Part shown: piece after piece, positions 16,216 through 56,170 of the stretch
How positions within the stretch are numbered: the first letter of the stretch is position 1
How the letters are laid out: each line of letters opens with the position of its first letter
The notes under the pieces: model-generated
Told to the model about the DNA's origin: nothing
Seen by the model: the letters and a program-made list of their open reading frames with translations, nothing else
The model's database searches: none
Assembly (NCBI RefSeq): GCF_001194135.2
Contig: NC_068988.1
Coordinates: 60,209,420-60,273,419, forward strand
Length of the DNA: 64,000 bases
Reading direction: 5' to 3'
Source: Octopus bimaculoides
Lineage: Eukaryota
Program-made: the position numbers and the translations under genes

Positions 16216-16940
16216 ATCATGTTGTCTCCATGTGCGCCTACAGAGTATCTCAACAGGGATGATAGAGCTGCACAATATATTCACTGGGTAATATGCAAAA
16301 ACCTGGACTTGCCCCATGATAAAAACTGGTGGGAACACAAACCACCCCCAGTACTTGAAAATTATCACATCGCACTCCTCTGGAACTTCACCAATCAAAC
16401 TGACAGAAAGATAGATGCAAATAGGCCAGACATCATACTGAAAGCCTTCAGACAAAAATCATACATCCTCATTGATTTGACTGTCCCAATCGATATAAAC
16501 GTATCTGTGAAGACCTACCAAAAACTGAGCAAATATAAAGATCTTGAAATAGAAATTAGCAAAATGTGGAATCTGAGGGTTAAAACAATACCTATTGTCA
16601 TAGGTGCCCTGGGAATGACAGCGAAACCGGCTGATTACTACCTAGCTCAGATACCAGGAAACCCCAAAATGGCTGAAGTTCAAAAGATAGTGCTCATGGG
16701 AACTGCCCATTTCCTACGTAAAATACTGTGTATGTGATCTCAGATTTTAAAACAAACACATAATTTTCTTATGGTTTCTTAAACATTCTCTAGAACAACA
16801 CTATGTACAAATTCAAATATATGGTACCCTAGGCACAACACCTACAGGAACTTCTAACTTGTTGTCTCTTGAGGTCTCTGGGTGAGACTTGGATCCAACT
16901 TGTACAAATGCAAAACAAAAGTCAAACGTAAAATAATAAT
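16216..16940 (+). mobile_element. REL-endonuclease LINE 3' part with an uninterrupted endonuclease reading frame (16219-16737)
   Basis: YLNRDDRAAQYIHW...LLWNFTNQTDRKIDANRPDIIL...IDLTVP...KLSKYKDLEIEISKMW...IPIVIGALG matches the restriction-like endonuclease of R4/Hero-type elements. The 5' part is lost in an N gap and the tail is aaaataataat. Confidence 0.88.
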
Positions 16941-16964
16941 GAAAATGGTTTCAAATTTTGCCAC

Positions 16965-17160
16965 AAGGGCAGCCACTTTGTGGGAGGGGACAAGTCGATC
17001 TCATCGACGCCAGTGTTCAACTGGTACTTATTTTATCGACCCCGAAAAGATGAACGCCGTATTCGACCGCGGTGGAATTTGAACTCAGAACGTAGTGGCA
17101 GACGAAATACCATAAGGCATTTAGCTCGGCGTGTTAACGATTCTGCCAGCTCACCACCTT
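16965..17160 (-). mobile_element. SINE family B copy, adjacent to an (AAT)n tract
   Basis: caagtcgatctcatcgacgccagtg...gaatttgaactcagaacgta...ctgccagctcaccacctt. Confidence 0.8.
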
Positions 17161-17432: not shown

Positions 17433-20085
17433 GATTTTATATTTATTTACTTTTCAAATATTTCTTTTAAGCATTTTTGTAAGGTTACCGCGTTCCACGT
17501 ACATCTCTGTTAGTTTAAAATCTTGACATATCTTGATAAAAAGATACATTTAAAATTGTAGAATGAGAGATAAAGGAGGTTGGGGAAAATGGTTAAGTTA
17601 CGTAAACACTTTGGCGCTATGATGTCAGAAAAACGATAAATGGAAACAAACAAGTGGAATTTACCTTTAGGTAATTTTTTATGGGTGACGTATGAGTGTG
17701 TATTAATTTCTATATGTATGTGTTTTATGCATATATACGTGCGTGCATATGTGTGTGATATACGCGTATGTATATATATGTGTGAGTATGTGTGCGTGTG
17801 TGAATGTATGTGTATGGATGTGTGTGCATTTGTGTGTACAATGCATGTTTCTGAGAATATTATGTATATACACAAGTTTTTACTTTATATGTGAGCGTTG
17901 TGTGTATTTCTCTTGCACGTATGTTGTACGAATGTATGCGTTTTATTATTAATGTAATTGCCTGAGCCCTGAAACATCCAATAATCAATCAAAAGTGCGA
18001 ACAATAAAAATATATCTAACGCTAAATCCAACTTTTCTAGAACATGGTATTTTTTCAAGAAATCTAGTATAAATATAATCATCTCACAAAACAATATAAT
18101 GTCTTTTTGATCTTTTGTGCCTGGAGCTAGTTTTGTTCTAGAGGGTATACCTTACGTGATGTTATCTGGTTTATTTTATTTCAAATTAACCTTGTTTGAT
18201 TGTATATTCCTGAATAACTACTTCTTCCTTTGAGAATATATCAACACTTAAAATGTTTATCTACACTAAAAGAACTTTAATCGCATAGATCAATGTCTAA
18301 TGAGGCGTTGTCGTCGTAGGTAAAAACTGATGATCACTGCTTCCTGAAGCTGTAGGGTAGATATAAAAAGCTTTCTTGTTTCTTTGAAAAATGGTGGTAG
18401 AATGAAATGATGGTTGATGTTTGACGGGTTGTTGAGGTTGTACAGACAGATAGTTGATGGTTGGTAAGGTACCGTCGTCATCGAATAAGATGACGTCAAC
18501 GATTGCTAAATTATCGACGAGTTTGTACAAGCTGCGGCACATGAAAGGTAAAGTGTCGTCGTCGTAGAACAATGTGGCAGGTGATGTTTGGTGAGGTATC
18601 GTTGTTGTAGTGTGACAGATGTTTTATTAGATATCGTTGTCGTGGAGTAGGGTGATGTTGATGGATGGTGATGTGTCTTCACGGTAAAATAAAGTGACGA
18701 TTGATGTTTAATGAGATGCCGTTGTCGAACCATATGGCTTTGGTGTTTGGTGAGGTATCTACGCATGACAAAGTTTATGTTTATAGATGCCTTGTGATGT
18801 GTTGCCATGAGATGAAAGAGTGACGGTAGATAGATACATGTTAGTGATAGTAATAGGTACAGGTTTGTGTGTGTGTGAAAGTGTGTGCATGTTAAAATCA
18901 TATGAAGTGTGTATGTGCCTCACTGTATGTGTATATTTACATGCTTGCGCAATTGCATGTCTGCATGTATCTGCATGCATATTTGCGTACATGTCTACTT
19001 GTATATACGAGCTTGTTTACTTTTTATGTCACCTGTTGTCCCATGCGTATAGTATATCTAACAGGGAAGAAGTAGAAGGAGAGAGACCTATCTATTCCAT
19101 TAAAATTGGTTGGTGGTTGCCACATTGAACCAAGTAAAGCTAAAAATGTACGCATTTATCATAGTGCCACGACTAGGTTGTACAATAGTGTTGTAAAGCA
19201 GTCTTTTATCACTTTTGTATCTGTCTTTTGATGACGGTTGTCGTTCTGCCAGATATTGTTATATTCCAGAGACGTCGATAGAATAGTTCCATCTGGTTCT
19301 GTATGACACCCGATCGTACAGTGTTATTACCCTCAAAGGGTTTGATCATTATAACATCCACTCAGTATCACAGTATAATTACTATATCAACACAGACACG
19401 ACTATTAACAGTCTACACGTATTCTCGACCTTCTACCTTCTCTGTCGACCGGCTACCACCACTTTTTACCGGGAGGGTGTACAGTTTCTGCAGTCGAGTA
19501 GCAGTTGTGTAGCGGTTGAGTAGAGATCATTCGAAGGTGCTAGATAGCAGTAGCTTGAGACATAGCAGTTTCACTATACGACAGATAGTTCTATTACTTC
19601 ATTGCTTGATCTGCAATAAACAGCGGCCAAATTTCCCTCAAACCATACCCAGCCCTCATTAAAGAATTATGATATAAGTATTATTGGTTAATGAGGATCT
19701 ATATGATATATATTTCAGAAGTAATCTTATGGTCACAAATGGACGTCTTTTAATCGTATTTAATCGTATCTGTTCCGTAAGATACGATCCGAAAGAATAC
19801 AATTATTTACATCTTACCAGAGTAAACTAATTAATTTATCGTTCATGACTCCACGATAGCAACTAAAATCAAATCTTTCACCTTTCACCCCATACAAGAT
19901 TAACTATTGACACAATATTATAAATGCATGACGTTATGAGTGAAATAATTTAATTTAATGTAATTCAACTAATAATATTTATGCTTGAGGAAAAGAAAAC
20001 TTTAATTCACTGTAAGAGACAGGTACTCTAATCATTTTTGAATGACAATATGTCTTCTCACCAAATAAGGAATAAGTTACGCTTT

Positions 20086-20146: not shown

Positions 20147-20433
20147 GAGAAATATATATATGGATAGCTTCTTAAAATCATTCTCTTTACATACGCTTTA
20201 TTATCTTTATCTGCTTTTTTTCTGTTTGATTTTACTTTTTCAGTCATTTCACTGCAGACATGCTGCAGGACAACCATGAAAGATTTTACTTGAACAAATC
20301 AACTCCAGGACTTTTTAAAGCCTAGTACATATTATATCGGTTCCTTTTGCCGAACTACTTATTTACGGGCTGTAAATATATCAATGCTGGTTAATTATAT
20401 ATATATTCTAGCAGAAATTAGAGATATACTCAC

Positions 20434-20636
20434 GTAAATTATATTACGGGATGTGTTCTTCTGGTCAATTTCAACAAGCACTGGTATTAGTGGCATTGCA
20501 CCAAATTGTGCTCTTGCATTTACCATGTAGTCAATTAGAGATTCATTGGCTTTCCATCCTTTGGTCACTATTGGCATTCCACCTGCTTCTTGTACCAAAT
20601 AATTAACATTCATAAATGATTTTTCTTTGATGTAAT
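20434..20636 (-). CDS. M13 peptidase exon (GG[W/M]P to D-x-KN-x-S-x-N region)
   Basis: Acceptor tatatatcaatag|AT and donor ATAATTTAC|gtgagt. 203 nt, phase 1 in and phase 0 out. Encodes (Y)YIKEKSFMNVNYLVQEAGGMPIVTKGWKANESLIDYMVNARAQFGAMPLIPVLVEIDQKNTSRNIIY, equivalent to the neprilysin GGWP...DDKNS region. Confidence 0.9.
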
Positions 20637-21119
20637 CTATTGATATATAGAAAATACAAAAGAAATGAGAAAAAAAGCATTCATTGGCTTCACAAAAATA
20701 CATAATATGGGTAATCGGGCGTGTTGCTGATTAAATGCACCCGATCCCCCTCTTTTACTTTCTAACCGTTATTGTGAAAGCATCAATAACCGTATTGAGG
20801 GTCCTCTGAGGATGCTGGAATAAAGGGAGAAATAATGGAATTTGCTAAAGGCACACAAGGACTGTGTGATGGTGGTGACCATGTTGAAACAAAAATTCTA
20901 TCCAATAACCCAGCGCAAAAGAAGGACAACGGAACCCCAATGGAAACTCTCTATGTTCTCGGTTGACCAGCTAAAACTAACGACCAAATATAGTACAAAT
21001 CACATTTTATAGTTTCGGAAACAGATAATGTGGATAACGTTAAAATGGATCATCTATATAAAAGAAAAAAATGACCGGATGGACACTGTCGGAATGCAAC
21101 GTTTTCTTGTCAGTGGAAG

Positions 21120-21705: not shown

Positions 21706-22538
21706 CAGGGTGCGAGGGGTAAATTATGACCATTTTATATTTTTTCGTGAGAGCGCATTGTTTTTTTTTTTTATTTTGTCGACTTTACACTATAGTGCGG
21801 TTAGTTGCGCAACGTCTGAGTAAAACAGCATCATGGCACAATTCATTCTGACAGAAATTTGGAAAGGACATGCTGTACTGTTCGGCATTCGCCCCAGAAT
21901 TTCAGCGTGTTTGGGTATCAATCTGAGGACGTACCGAGAGTGATGAAAATCATCATCTAGTCAACATCATGGTATTTGGAGTGATCACTAGTGATGACGA
22001 CTTTATGCCTTCAGCTATCTTCCCATACGGCCTCAGACTCAAAACGGAGTCCTACATCAAATGCCTGGAAGAGGTACTGCTCCCCTGGATCAAGGGCTTT
22101 GCTGCTGGAAGACCCTATGCCTAGCAATAGAACTTTTCACCATGCCACACTGGTAGGAGAACCCAATCATTGCTGTCAGACAATTTTTGCGACCACATCA
22201 CTCCTAACATGTAACCAACTATCTCCCCAGTCAGCAACCCCCTTGGTTATTATGTGTGGGGTGCAGTTGAGCGAGAGACCAACAAAACTCATAAAGATGA
22301 ACTGAAGGCAAGGATTATTGCAGTATTCACTAACTTAAACAACTAGACCGTCCAGAAAAATTCTGGAGTAGTCTGGAGGCCGTGGGTGAAACCTATGACG
22401 ATTTTATTGAATAAATTTATTCTTTAATATTTTGTGATATTTTTATGTAATTTTGGTAAAATATAACTGTTTAAATGAGATGTCAGTGTTATTTTTCTTT
22501 TTGTGTAAGTTATACGACAATATATTCACTGCACCCTG
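21706..22538 (+). mobile_element. Decayed Tc1/mariner-superfamily element, maT (DD37D)-like
   Basis: Termini ta|cagggtgc ... gcaccctg. The interior translates to NIMVFGVITSD...YIKCLEEVLLPWIK...RPYA*Q*NFSPCHT...SNPLGYYVWGAVERETNK, a degraded match to QQDSAPxH and NPLDYxVWG. Confidence 0.75.
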
Positions 22539-22541
22539 TGT

Positions 22542-22542
<1 letters not shown>

Positions 22543-22607
<65 letters not shown>

Positions 22608-22734
22608 GGATGGATGGATGGATGGATGGATGGATGGATGGATGGATGGATGGACGAACATACATACATACAGACAGACAGACAGACAGACAGACGGACG
22701 GACGGACGGACGGACAGACAGACAGACAGATAGA

Positions 22735-22765
<31 letters not shown>
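22543..22765. repeat. Compound tetranucleotide microsatellite (ATAG/ATGG/ACAG/ACGG)n
   Basis: Directly visible. It starts at the TA next to the right end of the maT-like element. Confidence 0.95.
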
Positions 22766-22929
22766 TGACACACACAAACATACATATGTATGTAGTAACA
22801 AAGATCACAAAAGTGACAGAGTACTGGCTAGCACCGCTTTTGCTACAAATAAGAGTTAAAACAGCCTAAAGCCACAAAAGCACTCTCAGAATGTACTGTG
22901 ATACTGAGTGGATGCTATAATGTCAGCGT

Positions 22930-22990
22930 ACATAGTCTGATCGCGATTTCGGATTTTGATGTGGACCATCTTAATCCTCATCAGCGAGTC
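22930..22990 (-). ncRNA. Type I hammerhead ribozyme motif: intact catalytic core, imperfect stem I
   Basis: Minus strand reads gactcg CTGATGA ggatt-aa-gatg-gtcca-catc-aa-aatcc GAAA tcgcga TC agact. Core CUGAUGA at 22984-22978, G10.1-C11.1 stem II, GAAA at 22950-22947, palindromic stem III AUCGCGAU, AUC cleavage triplet (predicted cut between 22939 and 22938). Confidence 0.8.
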
Positions 22991-23169
22991 TTAATCCCAA
23001 GAGTTAAATTGAAAAACCGTTGAAAACATGTACCGATTTTCAAAATAGTTTATACTCTATCAAATTTGTGACATCTATTAATTCTGCATTTAGATTCTAA
23101 TTGCTAATAAACCACCATTTTTAATTTGTTGTTTATACTTTTAATTTGTGTTTAACCCTAGGCGTTAAG

Positions 23170-23226
23170 CGTTACTAACGTGGGTTAAGATGGCCTACAT
23201 CAAAACCCGAAATCGCAATCCGACTA
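23170..23226 (+). ncRNA. Degenerate hammerhead copy (core mutated to CUAACGU), inverted partner of the 22930-22990 motif
   Basis: Reads ctaacgt gggtt-aa-gatg-gccta-catc-aa-aaccc GAAA tcgcaa TC cgact. Stem II is kept by a compensatory A-U to G-C change. The core differs from CUGANGA at two positions. Confidence 0.65.
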
Positions 23227-24424
23227 TGTACCTCCTTTCGTCAGGATTGTTGTGGCTTCTGAGTTGTTGCAACTCTTATTTTTAACAAAAGCGGTGCCAG
23301 TCAGTAGCCTCTGTCACTTTTGTGACCTCTATTAATTATGCTTTTAGGCTCTAAACGCTAATAAGCCGTTGTANNNNNNNNNNTACAGATACAGACGCAG
23401 ACACACAGACACAGACACACAAACACACAAACACACAAACACACAAACACACAGACACACACAGACACACACATACTCACTCACTCCACTTTAGTTCAAA
23501 TACGTATTTCGTGGTCGGCTGCTTTAAGAGCATTACAAATGTAGTGGCTATAATAGACAATAACTTTGTTTCTTTTAATATAACATCAACTAGGTGTAAG
23601 AATAAATGTTACGTCCAACGTTATCACCGTCCAACTTTACCTCTCATTTTGATTCACGATAACGATTATATACGCAAACTGTTCTTGATTGATATCGCAG
23701 ATTATTGGATAAAATTTGATGATTATTATGAGCTTTAAATTCTGGGCCGCATTCTAAGGAAATAGGTTAGTTTTTCAGCTCCTGGTGTGCCTTACTCTAA
23801 TGTAGTTTATCAAAACCTTTATGTGGAACTACATAATTATGTATATAGTCTCGAATTTTAGGAATCTTAATGGAATTGTGACATAAAATGGTTTATATAA
23901 GATTGCATAAAATAATCGGCGCCTTAGTTATACGGTGAACTTTTATGATTTTACAGGTTAAAGTGATATTTCATGCAAGCTTACTTACTATATAAAGGTT
24001 GCTTCATCGATTGGTTTTAAACAAGTTGTTAGATATATATCCTTTAATCAGGAACAAGATCTTTACAAGTGAAGATGAACCTCGATTAATCACAATATCT
24101 ATCTATAAGGTTTACTGTGACTCTGATTAAATAACTCAATTTACTGATTGATCGATTCATTAACGTTTTTCCATAACTTGGAAATAATCTATTGGAAGAA
24201 GAATTGGGTGGGGATCTTATGTGCTGTTTCATAGACGAGAAATTATCAAAAATACAGCGTACAACTAGAAAGAAAGTTCAAACTTTCCTTTCTCTTTGTA
24301 TGTAGTTTAAGTTTGAAAAATTACATATTAATTTCTTGAAGTCTCTAACAACTGCAGCTAAAGGTTTCTATTTTTCTTTCAAATACGATGAATTAACAAT
24401 TTAGCCACAAAAGTTTCAATCATT

Positions 24425-27979: not shown

Positions 27980-28178
27980 TGCCCAAGGCCTGAAATTCTG
28001 AGGAGGGAGCTAGTCGATTATATCGACCCCAGTGTTGAACTAGTATTTATTTTATCGACCCCGAAAGGATGAAAGCAAAATAAACTTCGGCGGAATTCGA
28101 ACTCAAAACTTAGCGCGAGACGAAATACCGCAAAGCATTTTGCCCCGCGTGCTAACGACTCAGCCACCTCGCCACTTT
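27980..28178 (-). mobile_element. SINE family B copy, adjacent to an (AAT)n tract
   Basis: tagtcgattatatcgaccccagtg...ccccgaaaggatgaaag...gaattcgaactc. Confidence 0.8.
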
Positions 28179-28193
28179 AATAATAATAATAAC

Positions 28194-28260
<67 letters not shown>

Positions 28261-31200
28261 TTATATATTGTATTAATTACTCTATATAAACAGTAGAATG
28301 TATGGAATCATCTGGCGTTTTGGAATCACGCCATACAAACACATATACACAACACACACACATACACATACACACGGAAAGACATAGAGAAACGTTAATA
28401 GGCTTACTGTTGGGTGTGGTGATTAAAATTCCGCTTCGCTACCAAAATGTTTTAGTCTGGGATCCACTGTGTGCCATCTTGGGCAATGGCCTTCTGTTAT
28501 AACTTCTGGACAGCCATTTCTTTTTAAATGAAATTTGTCGAACGGAAACCGTACGGGAGCCCATTATATATATACACGAGGGAGAGTTAAAAATGATAAA
28601 TCCTCTTGTTTTTTCAATGTATACCGAAAAGCATGACATAAACAAGTATGTCATTTTTCTATGCAATCTGCTTTCTTTCTGATGCACTTATATCCATTCT
28701 CTGAATGTTAGGCTTAAAATCAAGCAAAAACGGCAATATGATTGACTGCATTCGTAGAACGAAAACAGTAAAAGGATTAGTAAAGGTTAACTAATTGTGC
28801 CAAGCCACGGCAGAGGTGTATCTATGACTTTCACTGTGAAGAAGTGAAGCATTTATAGCCTAGTCTTCCGAATAGGGAAGATAAGCTACTCTGAGGCAAG
28901 TCTACGAGATAAATGGTTGAGTGCTTAAAAAATTCACCAGTGTTTTGCTCGGCTTTTGGCTATTCTATTTAACTGACTTCACCTTTTGGCTGCAAACAGA
29001 AACCTCGTATTCAACATAGCGTTCAGTCTTTTAATTACACAGATGCACGTTCTATTAAGTTCGACATTGCCTTTCATCTCTTCTGGGTTGGTGAAATAAG
29101 TACCAGTTGAGCACTATGGTTGTTCTTATCGTCAAGCACCCCTCCTCAATATTCCCTTAGTTGAAAGAGATAATATACTCAGAGGCATACCAAATCGGAA
29201 CCACTCCTACTATTTCAAAACATAGTGTACATAATGTTACCGCATTCTACGGTTTCTACTTTCTTTTACATAAAGAAACAGATATGAGCTAATACGAAGA
29301 ATATTTAGCTTGTATTTTAGGGCGTTCATTTTTTGAGGAAGTGTGTATGATCGAGTATACCTACAATTGAATTGATTGGCAATTATTTAATCATCGAAAG
29401 AATAAAATGCAAAATCGACCACAGCATATATTGAATCTTAAAATGAGAGTCGGTCTATGTTTCTTTGAAATAAAATAATTACTACACAACTTTTACTGCA
29501 ATTATTTCAACTCTAGTGGCTATAGCTGTAGAAATACAATTTCATTGAGCGTTCATGTCGGAGAGAGCGGGGAGAAGGTAGACTGTAATATTTTCCATTG
29601 AGCAGAATAGATTTAAATACTTCTAGCAAATACAAAAGACGAAACATGCCCAATAGGCATGCAGCCTGAAAAGAATGGTGAGGAACAAAAGAAGCTGACA
29701 AAATACGATATTCATATAGCGGAAAGGCGTGTGTGACGGTTCATGTCTATATGAAGTATCTCGGTCGTTTACATAGAATGTTTCTATAATTTAGAAATAT
29801 GTCAACTGGGTGCATAAGTCAAGTTACGTAACAACGCATATTATTCGGAATAATGTCAAGGAAAATAACTGCAGTTGATTCTGATTATTAGCATTTTGGT
29901 TTTTATAATTGGACAATAGTCTCATTGATGGAGTAAACTTTCTAAATACCGATTACTTTAGAATTAATTCTGAAGATTCGCCGACGAAACACAGCCAGAT
30001 GCCTAGTGAAACGAGGTAAAGTTCTCAAAACATCTGTAAAGCGAGGGCTCAGATGTGGACTGTATGACTCTAGTTGACCCGGCTTTAAGAAAGCCGTTAT
30101 GATTAACATTCAGAAAAGATTGGGATGCAAGCTGTTGGAGAATGTTGCTACTAATGACTTTCACCAGCATTTTCAGATGTCAGCAGAACAATAGTAGTTC
30201 TCAGTGCAGCCGCTTTTTCCTACTCATATAATCAGACAATAAAAGACATTTACAATGTTTAGAATTACACTCCGAAAGCTGAGAAAAACAATTACGTAAA
30301 GTTATAAACACTTCTAAACTATAATTCTGGCGTACAGCAAAAAGCTATGAAATCTGCTTACGGTTGCTAGATACCTCGAAAGCAAAAGGCAATAGCATAA
30401 GATTAAGTCCTTCCATCTAAAAGGAAGGAAGGACACAATGAAAATGAGGTCCCGAATACAAGGTCAACAAACAAGATGAATTGTCGGTGGCTAAACTCAT
30501 TGTTGGACTGTGTGACAAGTTTGCGTTGGGACTAAACAATAACATTGTTTTACATTGAAAGTGCCTTTGTGTTGCTCCTCCTGCAAGAAGCAGTAGCGAT
30601 ATCTCCTTGAAACCACTCTTTATCACTTTAACTAAGGGAAAAGGAATTTAAATATTTAATTATATATGTGTGTGCGCCTGAGCGTGTGTTCCTGCGTGTA
30701 AGTCTCTGCATGTGTGAGTGAGAGAGAGAGTGGAAAGAGAGAGAGATGTACAGACAGAATGAAAGAAAGAGCAAGAGAGAAATAGAAAGTTTGTGTTCTG
30801 AGGTGTGTGTCACAATTTTTTTCATCTATGTAGCCAAAAGTAGTATGTCCATATCTTGTTCAGGGCTTTCTGATAAATTTTCTAAAACGAATAATTGTAT
30901 AGAGTAAAATTGTTCTTTGAATCAATATTCTAAGATCATTTATACCTAATTAGAATATGTTGAAGGCAATTTATTAGTTGTATTGTTGATTCATGAGATT
31001 ATAATTATTTTAGGCTATTAATGAACCCGAAAGTTATATCAACCAGCATAGTTGCAAGTTACAAGAAAGTCTAACGACTAGTATAAGAAAATATACTTCT
31101 ACCTGAGGAAAATATGCGTTAACTCATGATTTGAGTGTTTGGCTAAATTTTGTTAGGCCGTGGATTAGATACTCAGATCATCAGTAGGTTGAATCGTTGA

Positions 31201-32796: not shown

Positions 32797-33026
32797 TTTC
32801 ATTATTACCCACAAGGGGCTAAACATAGAGGGGACAAACAAGGAGAGACAAAGGGATTAAGTCGATTTCATCGACCCCAGTGCGTGACTGGTACTTAATT
32901 TATCGACCCGAAAGGATGAAAGGCAAAGTCGACCTCGGCGGAATTTGAACTCAGAACGTAACGACAGACGAAATACCACTAAGCATTTCGCCCGGCATGC
33001 TAACCTTTCTGCCAGCTCGCCGCCTT
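32797..33026 (-). mobile_element. SINE family B, full length, with 16-bp target-site duplication
   Basis: tacgtcagcttcttta occurs at 32781-32796 and 33027-33042. The body gtcgatttcatcgaccccagt...gaatttgaactcagaacgta...gccagctcgccgcctt is shared with several other copies. Confidence 0.9.
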
Positions 33027-35909
33027 TACGTCAGCTTCTTTACTACAGGCCATATATTTGGCATGCTGAGGTTTTGTCCCCACCTATCATCCAGTCCTTC
33101 AAATGCTTTTTCTCTTGCCAACTAAATTCTGTAGAAGCTCATGACAGCGATGATAATGGTTACACTGTTGCCATGGCTACAAAGGATGGCCGCAAGGAGA
33201 GCGGCTACGGCAGTATCGGTAGTAACTGACGATGGCCACAGCTGCTGTAATAACTTGGTAGAAGCAACTGTAGCAATAATAATGGAGATGTTAACAATAG
33301 TTGCAGAGATAATAACCATTTTTTCGTCAGCAACCACACAGAGCTCAATTTAGTGTAGCACAAAAATATCTTATTAAACAAAAAGGAAAATTAAAAGAGT
33401 TCACCAAATTGCGTGTCATACGGTTAACCTAGAAGCACCTCACACACAACAGAGCCAGCCTGGGGTTGAAAAGACATCCCCTGACGCAACCTCTTCACTG
33501 AATATCAAAGTGTATGATCACTTGAATTGATTTGATTTTTGTATGTGTTCTATCTTTACATTTGCACCAATCTTTTTTCAGCCATGTTGGGAGTCGAGTA
33601 CTGATACTTCCAAGCGCGCCAATTACTACTGGTATCAAGTCCACTCTCTTCATTGCGTGTTTCTGATTTCAAATTCTTATTGTCGTTCAATTTTCAATTT
33701 CTTCTTTCTCTTTGATCTTGTCAATGGGACAGGCTATGTTTCTTTTTTTTTATATATATATTTTGTTTTTGTTTTTGAATTTTATACATAGGATGTGATA
33801 AGCATAGTGGTTCGTCTCGGACTGGGTTTTGACACAAAATGAAAGACACGAGTAGGAGAATGACACGAGATACCTTGAGTATACGTGGCATAGGCCAGCA
33901 AGTCGCTAGAAGCAAAGGCGGCATTAGACTCGGTATGATAAACTTTCAGATAAACACTATCTGGAAGAACATTATGAAATGTGTCATTTTGTTAGTTTTT
34001 GTCTTTTCTAAAATCACCAAATGATATTTGGTATGTCATGCTGCTATTTCTATAAGATCGTCGAACCGATTTCCAAGAATCTGTATCTTCCGTTACTTTG
34101 AAGATTTTTCTACTCTTGCATTCTTTCTTTCCTTTTCTTTTCATTCCTTCAAGAAATGAAGCCAATACACTTACACACGAAAGCAAATATAATTTGTAAT
34201 AGAACTGAAGTGTTGCTATCTTTATATCTACCTTTGTTCAGTTATCAGCATATCAGTTATCCTGAATGTACTCTACGAAAGTGCTAAGCATTGCCTCAAC
34301 AGTAAGTGACGTTTCATACAAATATCATCAATATAATCGTGTTATCGTCAGTGAGAATAATTATCTAGCATGGGCTGTTCAATAGGAATAAGACAAAAGA
34401 AGTGAATATTAAGTTATTTTGAATGAATTGTAAGATGACGTATTTTCGTAGATTTCCTTTGCACCTGCAGTATGAATAATAAGTGCAGTCAATTCAACGG
34501 ATTTCTTCAGTATTCACACACTTACGAGCACACATATATTATAATATAATCTATTATACCGTACTCTATTTTTACTTTTTAATATATTATATTATACCAT
34601 ATCATATTACATTATATTATATTCTTGTACTTGTTTAAGTCACAGGACGGCAGCGGCGCTGAGGCGCCACCTTCATGTGTCCGTCAGGTAAATCGACCCC
34701 ATTACATATATGATATGCTTCCCAATGTTACGGTTTCTTTGTACTGAACTGCTAAGTTAACTCCATTTTACAACACTTAATTACACACATATACACACGC
34801 TTTAAATAATACCTGTATACATGTAAAGCACTTCACAGCGATATGACCATATGAAACCTGCAAATATAGGAGTATATGGTTTTACAAACCAAATTTTAAC
34901 CTTGATTTTAGAAAGTATACAGAGTCATTAAACCATAGACTTTTCCCCCTTCGTTGCATCGGCTTCGCTTTGTTCAGCTTTTTGTTACAGTCATATCAGA
35001 GATCTTTGAAATTTTTCCTGTTCAAATACGTAAGTGTTGCTTATAGTTATTAATAATATACGCTCCATGCAGCATAACTAAATTGCTCTAGTAATGCTAA
35101 ACAGCATCGCATGCGCTTGCAACGGGAATGAATCCCATGCAGTACAGGAAATATAAATGAAACTGATGAAGGTTATTTGGCAGGAGAAATACAACTTAAA
35201 AGATTTAATTATAGTACTTCAAAATCTGAAATTAATTTGTAAAATTTTGTCGTGAAGCTCCAGGAGTTGAACATAAATTATTACATTGAGACTGTCTGTG
35301 ACTGAATAGAACTACATATAAAGGCAAGGCAAACATATCTTCACATTGCATAATGCAAGTAACAACATCTGGAATAAGCTTGAAGGTATTATCACATTCT
35401 TTTGGCAACAACAGTTATTAAATATATACAAAAAAATAATGAAAAGTAATGCAGAAATTTTTAAAGTAACGTGATTGTTGTCTCCTTGTGAGTTGACAGC
35501 TGGGAGAACTACTTCTTCCAGCACATCATTAACGGACTCATTTCAGAGAAAGCGGATTTCAATAAAACTCAACATGATATTTGATTTTCTGTTTTGTCGG
35601 GCAAGTATTTTTATATGAAACTTTGTTAGAAGAGTTCAACAAACTCCTTCTTTGAGGCAAAGATTTTATTTCACCAACAGCTGTGTCAATTTAATTCTTT
35701 GTGATTTACAGTCAAAATACATTTGTTTTTCTATTTTTATGTAAGTTGATTATTCGTAACTTGTGTTCATCGAACAATTCCTGAATTTGAAGCATCAAAA
35801 AGTATATAGAAAAGGAATATATCAATAAATTATCCAAAGCTCTATATAAATACAACATTTTACAGTTTTAATTTAGGTAGTAAAACAAAATGAAAACCTC
35901 TCAACTTAC

Positions 35910-36068
35910 CAATAATTCGTTGTTTTTCAATTTTTATGTCCTCCCTGAAAATGTCTTTTGCACTATATGGCTTTACCGGATGTGTATCAATCCAGTCTCC
36001 ACATGCATATTGATAAAAGTTGGTACAAGGTTCAACTGACATATTCATTGCTTGCAGAATACGTGCCG
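35910..36068 (-). CDS. M13 peptidase exon with the PCxxFYxYACGxW signature
   Basis: Acceptor ttcaaaatag|CG and donor ATTATTG|gtaag. 159 nt, phase 1-1. Encodes (A)ARILQAMNMSVEPCTNFYQYACGDWIDTHPVKPYSAKDIFREDIKIEKQRII, the hallmark N-terminal motif of the neprilysin/ECE family. Confidence 0.95.
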
Positions 36069-37023
36069 CTATTTTGAAACGAAGAAAGGAATTATAATTA
36101 TTTCAGTCTTCATGCAATTTATTTCTACTTTTGAACTGGATTAAAATTATGTTTTATTACTTTAATCGATTGGATTTATATTAATTTTAGAACAATAATG
36201 GCTGACTTTTAGTAATGCTACATTAGTTTAATCAATGATTTAAACATTTTCTTATGCTAGTTTCATTACACCTTCTCTTCTTATTTGTGGGAACGTCAAG
36301 ATATAAACAAAAAAGAACGATATAGAAATGTTTTTAAGTATTCTGTATAAATTGAAATGGTTCATTCTGTCTTTCACAGCTGTGAATATATGTGTTTCTT
36401 TATCGTGATATATAATTACACTCGCTTTAATTCTTATTACAGCCTTTAGAAGCAACATTATAATAATAATTAAATTTCACTACCAAAGAAATTTTTTGTA
36501 CTTCATTATTTCCACAATAGCAGATTTTTTTTAAAGAATCATTAAAACTTTCTGACGGCAACTATGGTTTCAATTTATTGACTACAACTCATTTCATTTA
36601 CTTTTCTTCAATACAATCTTAAGGAAAATAAATCAGAGTTAGTTTGAATAATGCTGAGAAATGTTATTCTACTAATTACCAGCTTGAATTCTAAATATTG
36701 CCAATTTTTTTATTACATCATCAATAATACAGACTTAAGAAAATATTATTTAATGATTATTTTCTGTTTTTACGAAATTCATCTAGATATTAATCTGACC
36801 AGTCACAGAATTATTTTTGAGTAAACGATGGAAACATTTTACTTTCAAATATATTTTAGTCCATCATAGCGAAGTTAAGATATCTGAAATGAAATGGGGT
36901 GCAAATGATTTTATAAAACAGGACACATTAGACCAAGAAATCTTGAAAAGATATTATGGCAACAGATAGTACAGTTTGATCATAGATTTCGTCAACCAAA
37001 ATTAACGATGAAGACTAATAATA

Positions 37024-38264
37024 TCAGGTCATCCCATAAGTTATGTCCGATTTTACCATCTTTAAAATTGATTGAAATTTTATAGTATTTTAGAATGTCT
37101 AATGGAATTAAAATTTATTTTTATGCATTTGCGTACATTTAAACTAATTAAATACTATTTTAAAGAATAATAGAATTAAAATTTCTTTCTAATATGGAAG
37201 TATCCAAAGAGCATTTAAGGCACATAATGCTTTATGAGTACAAAAAGGAAACTGCAGCCGAAGCGACTCGAAACATACACTCAGTTTATGAGAAAGAATG
37301 CTTCAATGAAAGAACTTGCAGAAGATGGCTTGCAAAATTCAGAAGTGGAGATTTCAGCTTTGAAGATGAAGATCGAATAGGACTCCAGTTGAGTTTCATG
37401 ATAAGCTTCTTGAGGCATTACTTGAAAAAATCCTTCATTATCGATAGATAATAAAGCTTAGTTCAAACCATACAACACTTCATCTTCATCTTCAACAACT
37501 TGGAAAGATTCCTAAACTTGGAAAATGGGTGCCTCATGAATTGTCCGAAAGCAACCGCAAATCCCGAGTTGACATCTGCTCTTCTCTCCATTCTCGCGAA
37601 CTCATTTCACCCTTTTTGGATAGACTTGTGACGAAAAATGGATCTTCTATCGAAATGTTAAACGTCGTAAACAGTGGCTTGGTAAAAGGGAAAAAGCTCA
37701 ACCACAACTGAGAAGGGAACTTCATATGAAAAAGGTTCTTCTCTCTATCTGGTGGGATTGCAAAGGAGTAATTCACTTTGAATTGTTACCACCTAATGCA
37801 ACAATCAATTGTCAGTAATTAGAGTGTTTGAACCAAACTTGAAGAAAAAAAAGACCTGCTTTAGTGAATCGAAACAGAGTGATGTTTCATCAGGACAATG
37901 TGCGACCCCACACCGCAAAGATCACATCACAGAAGATCGAATAGCTTGGTTGTTAAAAGATTCCCCATCTACTTTATTCTCCTGACCTTGCTACATCAGA
38001 CTACCATTTGTTTCGTAGTTTACAGAATCATTTGGGGGACATAACTTTCGCAAGTCAGGAAGAGGTCAAAACTGACATTTCAGAGTTCTTAGCTTTGAAA
38101 CCAAGAGTTTTACATTGATGGGATTAAAAAACTTGTAAACAGATGGAAGGAAGTCATAGATAATCAGGGAAGGTACATTGAGGATTAAATTTCAATTAGA
38201 TATAACATTTGATCATTTGTTTTCTTTATTCAAAAATTCGGACAAAACTTATGGGATGGCCTGA
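37024..38264 (+). mobile_element. Near full-length mariner (DD34D-type) transposon with a pseudogenised transposase
   Basis: TIRs tcaggtcatcccataagttatgtccga / tcggacaaaacttatgggatggcctga (25/27 match), TA at 37022-23 and 38265-66, 1241 bp. Transposase fragments: MEVSKEHLRHIMLYEY...WLAKFRSGDF, WVPHELSE, HQDNVRPH and YSPDLATSDYHLF, with frameshifts and stops. Confidence 0.93.
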
Positions 38265-38622: not shown

Positions 38623-39518
38623 CACGAAGTGATGCCTAAAGGAAACCAGAATTTTGCAATGCTATTTTATTCACTTACTTTTATATATTTACACTTTTAT
38701 CGCCTTGTAAGTATTTTCCATTTGAAGCAATGCATCGATCCAGACGCGTTTTTCACTGTTGGAAGCAGTGCTAGAATTCTTGCGAAGTGATACCTATTAA
38801 CGCCTCCGTTGTTTTTTTTTTCTTCACCTGTTCCACGTCTGCAAATCCCGTAGCACCAGCTTTCGTTACCAGTGATGACCTTCTAAAGAAAGTCCGGATC
38901 AAATTCCAACTCTCCTTTCAGTTCACAGCACGCATTCAGTCGTGACTGCTTTTGATCTTCCGTGAGCAAGCGAGGCATACATTTTGCTGCAACTTTTTTC
39001 ATTCGCAATTCCTCGCTCAAAATTCTTGGTTTGGTATTCCAGGACACACCAGTCATACCAACAAGTTCGACAGTTGTTCGGTAACGGTCCTCCAAGATCA
39101 GTGCATGAATTTTCATGATGCTTCCATTCATTCCGGAGGTTGACGTATTTGGTCTTCAAATGACAAGTCACTATTCCTAATCCATGAAAGCCACTCGTAA
39201 TCTTGTGTTTTGCTCATGTCAGTGCTCTTGTAAGCTGGTTGAAGTATAAAAATATTTCAGCCGCCGTTTTCCCCAGCAGAAGACTGAGTTTCAAGGAAGT
39301 ACGCTCTTCCTTCGTTTCAGCAATCGCAAAAATAGACGAACAATGGAGAGGCATTGTAAAGCGAAGATGCCCCACGTGGTTGTATGACTTAACTGGGCCT
39401 CACCGGTCGGTAGACTGATGCCTGAGGGTTGCATCAAGTTGCTTCCACGGCGGAATCTTGAGCTGTAACGTGCTTGTTCTACAGAGGACGTTTCTGGTTA
39501 CATTTGGGTACCCCCTCG
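38623..39518 (-). mobile_element. Second, older internally deleted mariner of a different subfamily
   Basis: LSEELRMKKVAAKCMPRLLTEDQKQSRLNACCELKGELEFDPDFL (WVPRxLT...C...DPxFL motif) and C-terminal RLDRCIASNGKYLQGD. Degenerate TIRs cacgaagtgatgcctaaaggaaacc / ggttacatttgggtaccccctcgta. Confidence 0.75.
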
Positions 39519-50582: not shown

Positions 50583-50638
50583 ATTTCAAATCTTGGATTT
50601 CTGGCTTTGCATAAATGCTCTGCCTTCATCAGTGAAAT
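50583..50638 (-). ncRNA. Type I hammerhead ribozyme motif with intact core and perfect 6-bp stem I
   Basis: Minus strand reads atttca CTGATGA a-ggc-aga-gca-ttta-tgc-aaa-gcc-a GAAA tc-caa-ga T T tgaaat. Stem I atttca/tgaaat is perfect. Stem III is A-U, U-A, C-G with a caa loop. The triplet is AUU. The 10.1-11.1 position is A.A rather than a pair. Confidence 0.75.
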
Positions 50639-50797
50639 ATACTCAAGTACATAAATACAAATACATGTATATAAACAGTATACTTACATATACGGACGTA
50701 TACGTCCGTATATGCATACGTATATGTAGACGTCCGTATATGTAAGTATACTGTTTATATACATGTATTTGTATTTATGTACTTGAGTATATTCCAC
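50632..50797. repeat. Perfect 64-bp inverted repeat (50636-50699 / 50730-50793) abutting the hammerhead and running into an N gap
   Basis: aatatactcaagtacataaatacaaatacatgtatataaacagtatacttacatatacggacgt is followed 30 nt later by its exact reverse complement. It extends 4 nt further with 1 mismatch. The centre also holds a 28-bp perfect palindrome at 50687-50714. Confidence 0.9.
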
Positions 50798-51391
50798 NNN
50801 NNNNNNNNNNNNNNNNNNNNNNNNNNNNNNNNNNNNNNNNNNNNNNNNNNNNNNNNNNNNNNNNNNNNNNNNNNNNNNNNNNNNNNNNNNNNNNNNNNNN
50901 NNNNNNNNNNNNNNNNNNNNNNNNNNNNNNNNNNNNNNNNNNNNNNNNNNNNNNNNNNNNNNNNNNNNNNNNNNNNNNNNNNNNNNNNNNNNNNNNNNNN
51001 NNNNNNNNNTATATATATATATATATATATATATATGCATATCCATACAAATCGAATCTACACGAATTTTCCTATATTCACCGCCCGCAAACATCTCTGC
51101 CTGTGAACATTCGGTGAAGCTCTACATAGCGCCGATAACTTACCGGCCGCTATTTCGAACAATCATCGTATATACTGTACATTCGCTTTCTATTTATAAT
51201 TCTCCCTTTTATGATACTTTGTTCTTGCTGGATGATAATATTGCTATTTTGAAAAGAACGTACAAATGGAATATGTTGCTCAGTAAATGTTGCAAAAAAA
51301 TTGAGTTAGGGAATAGGTCTTCGTCAGAAAGAGCTATGCTGGGAGACGTTGGGGGAAAGAGAAAAAAATCCAGTAAAAGCACGTATGTGCT

Positions 51392-54899: not shown

Positions 54900-56170
54900 T
54901 CTATTATAATAAACGCGAAATGATGTCTGTCCGTCCGTCCGGACAGACATCATTTGCATTTGCTCTATACAGACATATACCATTGGGGAATCAGGATGAT
55001 AGTGGGATTGAAAATCTAGTTCTTCAATATCCAGCATTGGGAATAGTTCCGGATGAGGATTTGTTATACGTTAACGGTTGGAAATTTAAATATTAAAAGA
55101 AATCCAAAAATTTGGGAACTTACAATTTTTGCATTTAAGCTGAATTTAAAGTAATACAAAAATTTTGTGATGGCCCAAATCGAAATTCCGCCCAAATCGG
55201 ACTTTCGGCCAGATCGGACTTTCGGCTTTCCAGTCGGATCGGACTTCTGGCCGGATCGGACTTCTGGCCGGATCGGACTTCTGGCCGGATCGGACTTCTG
55301 GTCGGATCGGACTTTCGGTGGAGTCATTTTATTCAGACATTCACCTCAGCTGCTGGATCTTGGAAATGGAAACTGAATAACGGAGACATCAGTTTTCCGA
55401 ATGGCTGTGGCATTTNNNNNNNNNNATGGAAACTGAATAACGGAGACATCAGTTTTCCGAATGGCTGTGGCATTTTTATCAAAACTGTAGAATTGATTAC
55501 CGACTGATTTTGTGAATGATCCATGCTTACACTAAATAATGAAACTATCGAGGTTGTCAATTGGAAACTTATGCAATCAAGCAATACTGAGAAAAAATTA
55601 TTGCTCAATTGATATTGTTGTGGACCCCAATGAGGTTGTGAAATATCCTACTGGGTTTCTTAGCTCTTTAGATCCTCCTGGAATGCCTTCTCACAAATTG
55701 ATATGGAAGAAAGTAATTCCAATCACAATTTTTAGAAACCTGTATCCTCTGCAATGTAACAAACTGGCAAATGTATTCACATCTTTTGGAAGAAACAATC
55801 CCCACTGTACAAAGAAAGGGGGTAAATGTGTTTATTCCAAGAATTCTACTGATTCCAGCAGGCGTTCCCTTTGAATTCAAGAGACTTCAATTTCCAGTGA
55901 GAGTTTTGCAATATCAATTAACAAGAATGAAGGCCAACCACTGAAAATTGTTGTACTTCACCTCATGCAACAGTGATTTTCCCATAGTTAGTTCTATGTT
56001 GGTTGTTCCAGAGTTGGAAATGGCAAGAATCTGTTCCAACTCACACCAAATAGTAAAACCAACAATGTTCTCTATCTTTCTGCTTTACCGTGATCTCCAA
56101 ATGCCACAGTAATACACAATTCTGCAAATGTGATACTCTGTGATATAAATGTGAGGCGATAGGCTACGAA
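54900..56170 (+). mobile_element. Helitron remnant: 5'-TC start, internal minisatellite, decayed Pif1 helicase C-terminus
   Basis: a|TCtattataataaacgcg start at 54900. YCSIDIVVDPNEVVKYPTGFLSSLDPPGMPSHKL...RNLYPLQCN, VFIPRILLIP..VPFEFKRLQFPV, FAISINKNEGQ and FYVGCSRV (~55600-56030) match RepHel helicase motifs. The 3' CTRR end was not located. Confidence 0.8.
55195..55320 (+). repeat. 17-bp tandem array (ccggatcggacttctgg) inside the Helitron
   Basis: About 7 degenerate-to-perfect copies, GC-rich against an AT-rich background. Confidence 0.9.

Follow-up and report, generated by a model that had tools for sequence, protein, structure and literature searches.

The question raised by this locus is whether two hammerhead-like motifs, lying on opposite strands of a fold-back in the genome of Octopus bimaculoides, are remains of a self-cleaving mobile element or have come together by coincidence in a repeat of some other kind. 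The window analysed is a stretch of 64,000 nt (NC_068988.1, positions 60,209,420 to 60,273,419 of the forward strand; all coordinates below count from its first letter), and the fold-back lies at 22.8-23.4 kb within it. With a probability of about 0.65, we regard the locus as an old and degraded complex insertion of a short non-autonomous element of the Penelope-like or metazoan-retrozyme type, with a unit of ~254 nt carrying a type I 'minimal' hammerhead with a palindromic helix III. The features concerned are collected in Table 1.

Table 1. Features of the fold-back locus, of its flanks and of the surrounding peptidase-like frames.
Feature	Position	Strand	Remarks
Left flank	22536-22795	.	compound microsatellite (ATAG/ATGG/ACAG/ACGG)n, ending in ACAC...ATGTATGTAG; target of the insertion
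Left copy of unit	22796-23030	-	5'-truncated, 5' end facing the centre
Hammerhead-like motif, complete catalytic core	22933-22990	-	left copy
Left helix I, 5' strand	22990-22985	-	GACUCG
Left box 1	22984-22978	-	CUGAUGA
Left helix II	22977-22951	-	GGAUU-aa-GAUG-gucca-CAUC-aa-AAUCC, closed by G10.1-C11.1
Left GAAA	22950-22947	-	core box
Left helix III	22947-22940	-	8-nt palindrome AUCGCGAU
Left C17	22939	-	predicted cut between 22939 and 22938
Left helix I, 3' strand	22938-22933	-	AGACUA
Head-to-head junction, inverted copy to plus-strand array	23031-23054	.	24 nt, AT-rich, not clearly homologous to the unit
Partial direct copy of the unit's 3' region	23055-23113	+	81% to 23309-23367; pseudo-LTR-like partial tandem upstream of the right unit
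Right copy of unit	23114-23373	+	period 254, phase ambiguous
Degenerate hammerhead homologue	23169-23226	+	right copy
Right helix I, 5' strand	23169-23174	+	GCGUUA
Right box 1	23175-23181	+	CUAACGU: G5A and A9U; position 7 free
Right helix II	23182-23208	+	GGGUU...AACCC, compensatory G-C pair
Right GAAA	23209-23212	+	intact
Right helix III	23212-23219	+	AUCGCAAU, palindrome with one mismatch
Right C17; helix I, 3' strand	23220; 23221-23226	+	C; CGACUA
33-nt segment	23335-23367	+	also in the partial copy (23081-23113), absent from the end of the left copy
Assembly gap	23374-23383	.	10 N, directly after the plus-strand array
Right flank	23384-23490	.	(ACAG)n/(AC)n-type microsatellite, A/C/G-rich like the left flank
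Peptidase_M13_N exon-like frame	20398-20730	-	Pfam profile 73-135, E=6.9e-4, below gathering threshold
Peptidase_M13_N exon-like frame	35863-36102	-	Pfam profile 1-34, E=3.9e-7, below gathering threshold

Read on the minus strand, the left arm gives GACUCG-CUGAUGA-GGAUUaaGAUGguccaCAUCaaAAUCC-GAAA-UCGCGA-U-C/AGACUA, where the slash marks the predicted cut. An earlier note on this DNA had described a complete core in this arm, and each of its parts is present: CUGAUGA, a helix II closed by a G-C pair, GAAA, the palindrome and C17. The numbering of the cut predicted in that note is correct, and so is its account of the right arm as a homologue with a damaged core. The box C3-U4-G5-A6-N7-G8-A9 is found in the left copy and not in the right one, where G5A and A9U are two lethal core changes. 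The right copy keeps GAAA, C17, the closing pair G10.1-C11.1 and four of the six constrained positions of box 1, which indicates that the common ancestor of the two copies carried the motif and that box 1 of the left copy is no accident. In both copies, moreover, GAAAU is followed by AUC (22950-22939 and 23209-23220), fitting the GAAAY/RUH part of the CUGANGA/GAAAY/RUH definition of the hammerhead (PMC7229834, supplement). The cut sites of the two motifs are 281 bp apart.

To what extent could such a motif be expected by chance? Both strands of the window were searched with a general descriptor consisting of CUGANGA, a helix II of at least 4 bp, GAAA, a helix III of at least 2 bp closed by A-U, and H17, and the null expectation was taken from 300 first-order Markov simulations of the window. 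Two loci were matched, the present motif and a poor one at 35163. By chance, 0.14 loci per window are expected with this relaxed descriptor, 0.007 when a G-C closing pair and an insert of at most 40 nt are added, and 8e-5 with a strict descriptor, which asks for 5 bp or more in helix II and for a perfect palindrome of 6, 8 or 10 nt as helix III; the last figure corresponds to ~3 in 2.7 Gb of random sequence, 2.7 Gb being an assumed genome size. The strict descriptor was written after the motif had been seen, and its terms are published defining features, G10.1-C11.1 and a palindromic 15.2-16.2 being non-random properties of the hammerheads of Penelope elements (Cervera & de la Pena; PMC4209133). 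The hammerhead-like motif is real, and is unlikely to be a chance occurrence. The locus at 35163 (plus strand), in which CUGAUGA and GAAA enclose a 58-nt, A-U-closed 'helix II', was caught by the relaxed descriptor only and is regarded as chance.

Helix II has the same design in the two copies, with 5 bp, a 2x2 internal loop and 4 bp, closed by G10.1-C11.1, and all nine pairs are kept. Over this 27-nt module the copies differ at four positions. Two of these make up one compensatory pair, A-U in the left copy and G-C in the right; this is the change from GGAUU/AAUCC to GGGUU/AACCC that had already been pointed out in the earlier note. The remaining two lie in the terminal loop of 5 nt. When neutral substitution was simulated, all nine pairs were kept with a probability of 0.015-0.11, and all nine were kept together with at least one compensatory pair with a probability of 0.007-0.026, the values varying with divergence and transition bias. 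As far as one sequence pair can tell, it is suggestive of selection on the helix II hairpin while the two lineages diverged.

The arrangement of the copies provides a further line of evidence. The repeat search yielded an inverted pair of arms at 22928-23008 and 23151-23231 (81 nt, 79% identity, 142 nt apart) and two more collinear pairs, 22822-22863 with 23265-23306 (86%) and 22796-22821 with 23309-23334 (88%). By blastn the arms were aligned as a single match, 22796-23008 against 23334-23151, with 68.5% identity over 216 columns (E=7e-19). Inverted arms of ~200 bp around a 142-bp spacer, lying within 22801-23330, had been reported before. The arms are real, but the spacer holds a third, partial copy (23055-23113), and the element spans 22796 to at least 23373. 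The start-to-start spacing between this third copy and 23309-23367 is 254 nt, and the direct copy was confirmed by nhmmer; therefore the plus strand is a head-to-tail array with a period of 254 and at least 1.25 units. The 3' end of the left copy, at 22796, matches position 23334 of the right copy. If this point is the 3' end of the unit, the plus strand would consist of one full unit (23081-23334), preceded by a 26-nt 3' remnant (23055-23080) and followed by 39 nt (23335-23373) with which another unit begins. The 33-nt segment at 23335-23367 could equally be a 'tail' of the 30-40 nt Penelope-like kind or mark where the next tandem unit starts, and further units could be hidden in the gap.

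The entire insertion sits inside a compound microsatellite, and no clear target-site duplication was seen between the two microsatellite flanks. In the 26 nt shared by the three copies, 23, 19 and 22 positions are identical in the pairwise comparisons, so that the three are about equally diverged. The copies at the locus now differ by ~20-30%, and the insertion must therefore be old. The left copy also has ~32 extra nucleotides (22891-22922) absent from the right copy. A stretch of 29 nt within them, 22894-22922, occurs again 3.5 kb away on the opposite strand (19347-19375, 28/29 identity); it may be part of a different repeat, or reflect a template switch during insertion.

It was shown previously that Penelope-like insertions are highly prone to 5' truncation and form pseudo-long terminal repeats (pseudo-LTRs) by partial tandem duplication, and that an inverted copy, itself 5'-truncated, lies next to their 5' end; that they often carry a 30-40 bp tail at one end only; and that they are biased to microsatellites and cause assembly problems (Craig et al. 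2021, PMC8557442). The octopus locus resembles this architecture in its pseudo-LTR-like partial tandem with a head-to-head inverted, 5'-truncated copy on the 5' side, and likewise in the microsatellite, the want of a clear target-site duplication and the gap at the array; the ~33 nt present at one end only may be such a tail. It differs in being only ~580 bp long and in having no coding body.

A similar picture is obtained from the ribozyme itself. The minimal hammerheads of Penelope elements have a larger helix II, a helix I of 4-5 bp, a conserved G10.1-C11.1 pair and a palindromic 15.2-16.2, and are mostly dispersed as single or truncated motifs. 'Dual' minimal hammerheads occur 100-700 bp apart on opposite strands, and variants with a small palindromic helix III are found in Drosophila, rotifers, shrimps and mosquitoes (Cervera & de la Pena 2014, PMC4209133). 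With these the present motif shares the type I topology, a long helix II (here 5 + 4 bp) with G10.1-C11.1, a short helix I (4-5 bp as inferred for the ancestor), a palindromic helix III that implies a dimer, an opposite-strand pair in the same range of distances, and dispersed, truncated copies without open reading frames (ORFs). In contrast to them, it lacks an adjacent ORF for a reverse transcriptase or GIY-YIG endonuclease, an unbroken helix I in either copy, and the unpaired nucleotide between A9 and 10.1. Where helix III of the Penelope class has no or 1 bp, an 8-nt palindrome is found here, nearer to the Drosophila, rotifer and shrimp variants.

By analogy with what has been published on this class of element, the insertion could have arisen as follows. 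In multimeric transcripts two hammerheads would pair, their AUCGCGAU palindromes forming an extended 8-bp helix III, and each core would cleave after C17. The resulting unit-length RNA, possibly circularised, would be copied by a Penelope-type reverse transcriptase at a nick that its GIY-YIG endonuclease makes in a microsatellite. The expected outcome would be more-than-unit head-to-tail copies together with a head-to-head, inverted and 5'-truncated copy. At the locus these would be represented by the inverted copy 22796-23030 (minus strand), which faces at least 1.25 tandem units at 23055-23373 (plus strand) that end in the gap.

Several results weigh against this reading. In the left copy, only 3 of the 6 pairs of helix I are present and they are non-contiguous, where a type I hammerhead has at least 4 contiguous bp; the right copy also has 3 of 6 (3 contiguous, including one G-U), so that helix I is unformed in both. 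The earlier note had joined the left 5' strand to the right 3' strand and counted 4 of 5 pairs. The arithmetic is right, and such a chimeric helix has been set aside as evidence, since it was selected after the fact. By parsimony on the two copies, without an outgroup, the ancestral helix I would have had 4 bp (AGUC/GACU), a length that fits the expected 4-5 bp, and every one of these pairs survives in one copy or the other. Between the copies, moreover, the motif is least conserved over the helix I 5' strand and box 1 (6/13 identical), while helix II through the helix I 3' strand is about 43/49 identical. This pattern is opposite to that of a selected core. The absence of the unpaired nucleotide after A9, typical of the Penelope class, also counts against the reading.

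The covariance models were also silent. Rfam 15 gave no match at the gathering score in the whole window and, when 601 nt or 91 nt around the motif were searched at E<=10, no hammerhead family; what it matched there at E<=10 were fold-back artefacts (MIR7533, on both strands) and noise only. A model (R1) was built from four validated retrozyme hammerheads, one from a coral, one from a mussel and two from axolotl (PMC7229834, supplement). Even with filters off, the motif was not among the R1 matches in the window at E<=10, and its local match reached 7.0 bits over model positions 7-38 only (window-scaled E ~13). Three features account for this low score: helix II contains a 19-nt insert, helix III differs in sequence, and helix I is missing. 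The covariance-model check that the earlier note had asked for is thus negative with Rfam and R1 alike. As far as these models reach, their negatives set the motif apart from canonical type I hammerheads, and are compatible with the Penelope 'minimal' class, on which the models are uncalibrated.

Predicted folding gave a related result. In the lowest-energy fold predicted for the left motif, helix II is retained, and UCGC.GAU, from the helix I 5' strand and the core, is paired with AUCGCGA of helix III, an alternative that sequesters part of the core. The four validated ribozymes likewise have minimum-energy folds other than the hammerhead, with gaps of 3.6-7.4 kcal/mol; the gap of the left motif is far larger, although overstated by a few kcal/mol (the distal part of helix II was omitted). 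As an argument against a hammerhead, the competing hairpin was judged weak, because validated ribozymes also misfold by minimum energy.

A second hammerhead candidate was noted elsewhere in the window, at 50583-50638 (minus strand). It reads AUUUCA-CUGAUGA-A-GGC...GCC-A-GAAA-UC[CAA]GA-U-U/UGAAAU, with a perfect 6-bp helix I, a 3-bp helix III and an A.A mismatch at 10.1-11.1. It scores 19.5 bits with R1 (E=0.0028), Rfam is silent on it at E<=10, and it is single-copy in the window. The 5' strand of its helix I is overlapped by one arm (50632-50703) of a 72-nt inverted repeat, the other arm of which (50726-50797, 97%) ends exactly at an N gap (50798-51009). This repeat may be a real palindrome or an assembly artefact.

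The search for relatives adds further points against a Penelope-like or retrozyme-type insertion. Family members within the window, sought by blastn with word size 7, with a two-copy nhmmer profile and with a conserved 20-mer at up to 3 mismatches, were limited to the three copies of the locus, and no member was found in the metagenome, viral and prokaryote collections. A 24-mer common to both copies had a single match there (L001), which was dismissed as chance since it lies in a GC-rich bacterial contig with unrelated flanks. A translated frame of the element gave no match as a protein query, nor did exact-protein look-ups of two ORFs of the window. With Pfam, no reverse transcriptase or GIY-YIG domain was detected in the 20 tested stop-free frames of at least 75 aa, including those within ~5 kb of the locus, and no long ORF lies near it. 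It follows that the element is non-autonomous or a solo terminal fragment; any homology of the unit to a Penelope terminus is putative.

Could the locus instead be the remnant of a non-LTR retrozyme array, whose 254-nt monomers, mostly hidden in the gap, once gave small circular RNAs, the inverted copy being a secondary rearrangement? At 254 nt the period is in keeping with the size of metazoan retrozymes (150-450 nt), the GC content is less than 45%, and the array runs straight into the gap. A close parallel is the non-LTR retrozyme of Mytilus galloprovincialis (Mg353; Cervera & de la Pena 2020, PMC7229834), an AT-rich tandem monomer of a few hundred nt. Its hammerhead shares the mollusc-type design of CUGAUGA, G-C-closed helix II and GAAA, and has a near-identical helix III, in which a 6-nt CG-rich palindrome is followed by UC (ACGCGCGU-C in the mussel, AUCGCGAU-C here; the 3' halves read GAAA-CGCGCG-UC and GAAA-UCGCGA-UC, respectively, in the supplement of that paper and in the octopus). 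The mussel motif differs in its perfect 6-bp helix I, its 4-bp helix II with a pentaloop and its long arrays; it cleaves in vitro and yields circular RNAs. Likewise, the hammerheads of amphibian satellites and axolotl retrozymes are active only as dimers, their palindromic helix III being so weak that two tandem motifs must pair for cleavage. In those, however, loop 1-loop 2 contacts are conserved and the arrays run to thousands of units, and here no same-strand partner is visible. Only ~1.25 units can be seen at the octopus locus, and the copy on the plus strand has the dead core. The 6-bp helix I, 4-bp helix II and loop 1-loop 2 contacts of canonical retrozyme hammerheads are not found, helix II having 9 bp and an internal loop; the motif is non-canonical, with 7 bits from R1. 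Finally, the unit RNA is predicted to be only modestly structured (z = -1.96 and -2.21) and not rod-like. An array of this kind is therefore an unlikely, though not far-fetched, explanation. It differs from a Penelope-like insertion mainly in emphasis, as retrozymes are reported to be related to Penelope pseudo-LTRs and have been argued to be non-autonomous derivatives of them (bioRxiv 10.64898/2026.07.22.740005). By that derivation, the two options offered by the earlier note, a solo inverted pseudo-LTR or a retrozyme-like family, are two faces of one lineage. The note had the right neighbourhood, and the Penelope-type architecture supports it; it had neither a model match nor kin behind it, and helix I is broken.

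It is rather improbable that we are dealing with an unrelated interspersed repeat or fold-back, such as a miniature inverted-repeat transposable element (MITE)-like DNA element or rearranged copies of a short interspersed element (SINE), in which the hairpin served another purpose and CUGAUGA is coincidental. The silent covariance models, the absent helix I and the poor conservation of box 1 and the helix I 5' strand are all as this explanation would have it, and so is the favoured fold, a long hairpin of a plain kind; the complete fold-back is predicted to form a stable hairpin (-205 kcal/mol). However, a large coincidence would be needed, as the chance figures for the strict descriptor show (8e-5 per window, ~3 per 2.7 Gb), and the right copy retains four of the six constrained box-1 bases, GAAA, C17 and G10.1-C11.1. 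Nor do the arms end the element: the right and middle copies go 33 nt further. A terminal-inverted-repeat or MITE reading was rejected on this ground and on the lack of a visible target-site duplication, and a tRNA-derived SINE was rejected because no tRNA-like sequence, and hence no tRNA-like head, was found by ARAGORN. Exaptation by the host seems very improbable. By that account the intronic fold-back would serve as a double-stranded RNA substrate, for editing or small RNAs, or a sense hammerhead would modulate the pre-mRNA of an M13 peptidase. The locus does lie between two collinear minus-strand Peptidase_M13_N exon-like frames with the intact-core copy in sense, and its transcript would fold back over ~200 bp. 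Against this, the arms are only 68-79% complementary, decay is about equal in all three copies, helix I is broken, intronic transposon relics are commonplace and no sign of exaptation was found.

Returning to the Penelope-like or retrozyme-type insertion, its present state can be described more closely. Both copies are very probably inactive, the left one having lost helix I and the right one G5 and A9. Since no two intact motifs lie on the same strand, the dimer implied by the palindromic helix III cannot form from this locus, which is most likely catalytically dead and without a function of its own. It is quite doubtful, though conceivable, that the locus represents, in worn form, a family of Penelope-derived hammerheads that is lineage-specific and as yet undescribed, with a consensus of intact helices that cleaves as a AUCGCGAU dimer, tandem arrays (one perhaps in the gap at 23374) and circular RNAs of ~254 nt. 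If it were, this would be the first retrozyme-like family documented in the animal group, and sense copies in introns could cut host pre-mRNAs; our literature search found no description of hammerheads in octopus or other cephalopods. Should the family consensus be active as a dimeric hammerhead, one more animal lineage would be added to the catalogue of Penelope and retrozyme ribozymes. The locus would in that case also be a compact example, with ribozyme, partial tandem, inverted copy and microsatellite target all within 600 bp, of use in annotating repeats and in accounting for assembly gaps. No concept would be changed. Penelope-like elements and retrozymes with hammerheads have already been found widely, from cnidarians to vertebrates, molluscs included.

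As to the host gene, the two Peptidase_M13_N frames point to a minus-strand gene of the neprilysin/ECE type whose introns are long. Their sub-threshold scores are what would be expected of exon fragments, and a word-indexed protein search with the two frames returned no homologue. The insertion, situated between them, is probably intronic in this M13-peptidase gene, with the intact-core copy in sense to it. Selection would act against an active ribozyme on the sense strand of an intron, and the decay of the locus is in keeping with this.

Other repeats were noted in the window. A Mos1-type mariner HTH_48 domain at 37164-37448 (plus strand; E=1.2e-18, above the gathering score) marks a mariner transposon remnant, and the frame at 38886-39155 (minus strand), with no Pfam match, resembles it. 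At 55536-55871 (plus strand), a weak match to the Pif1 2B domain, below the gathering score (E=0.0057), could represent part of a Helitron or of a Pif1 helicase. Three stop-free frames on the plus strand, at 16932-17159, 28044-28286 and 32888-33226, share 'YLFYRPRKDE...' and are probably three copies of one SINE-like interspersed repeat.

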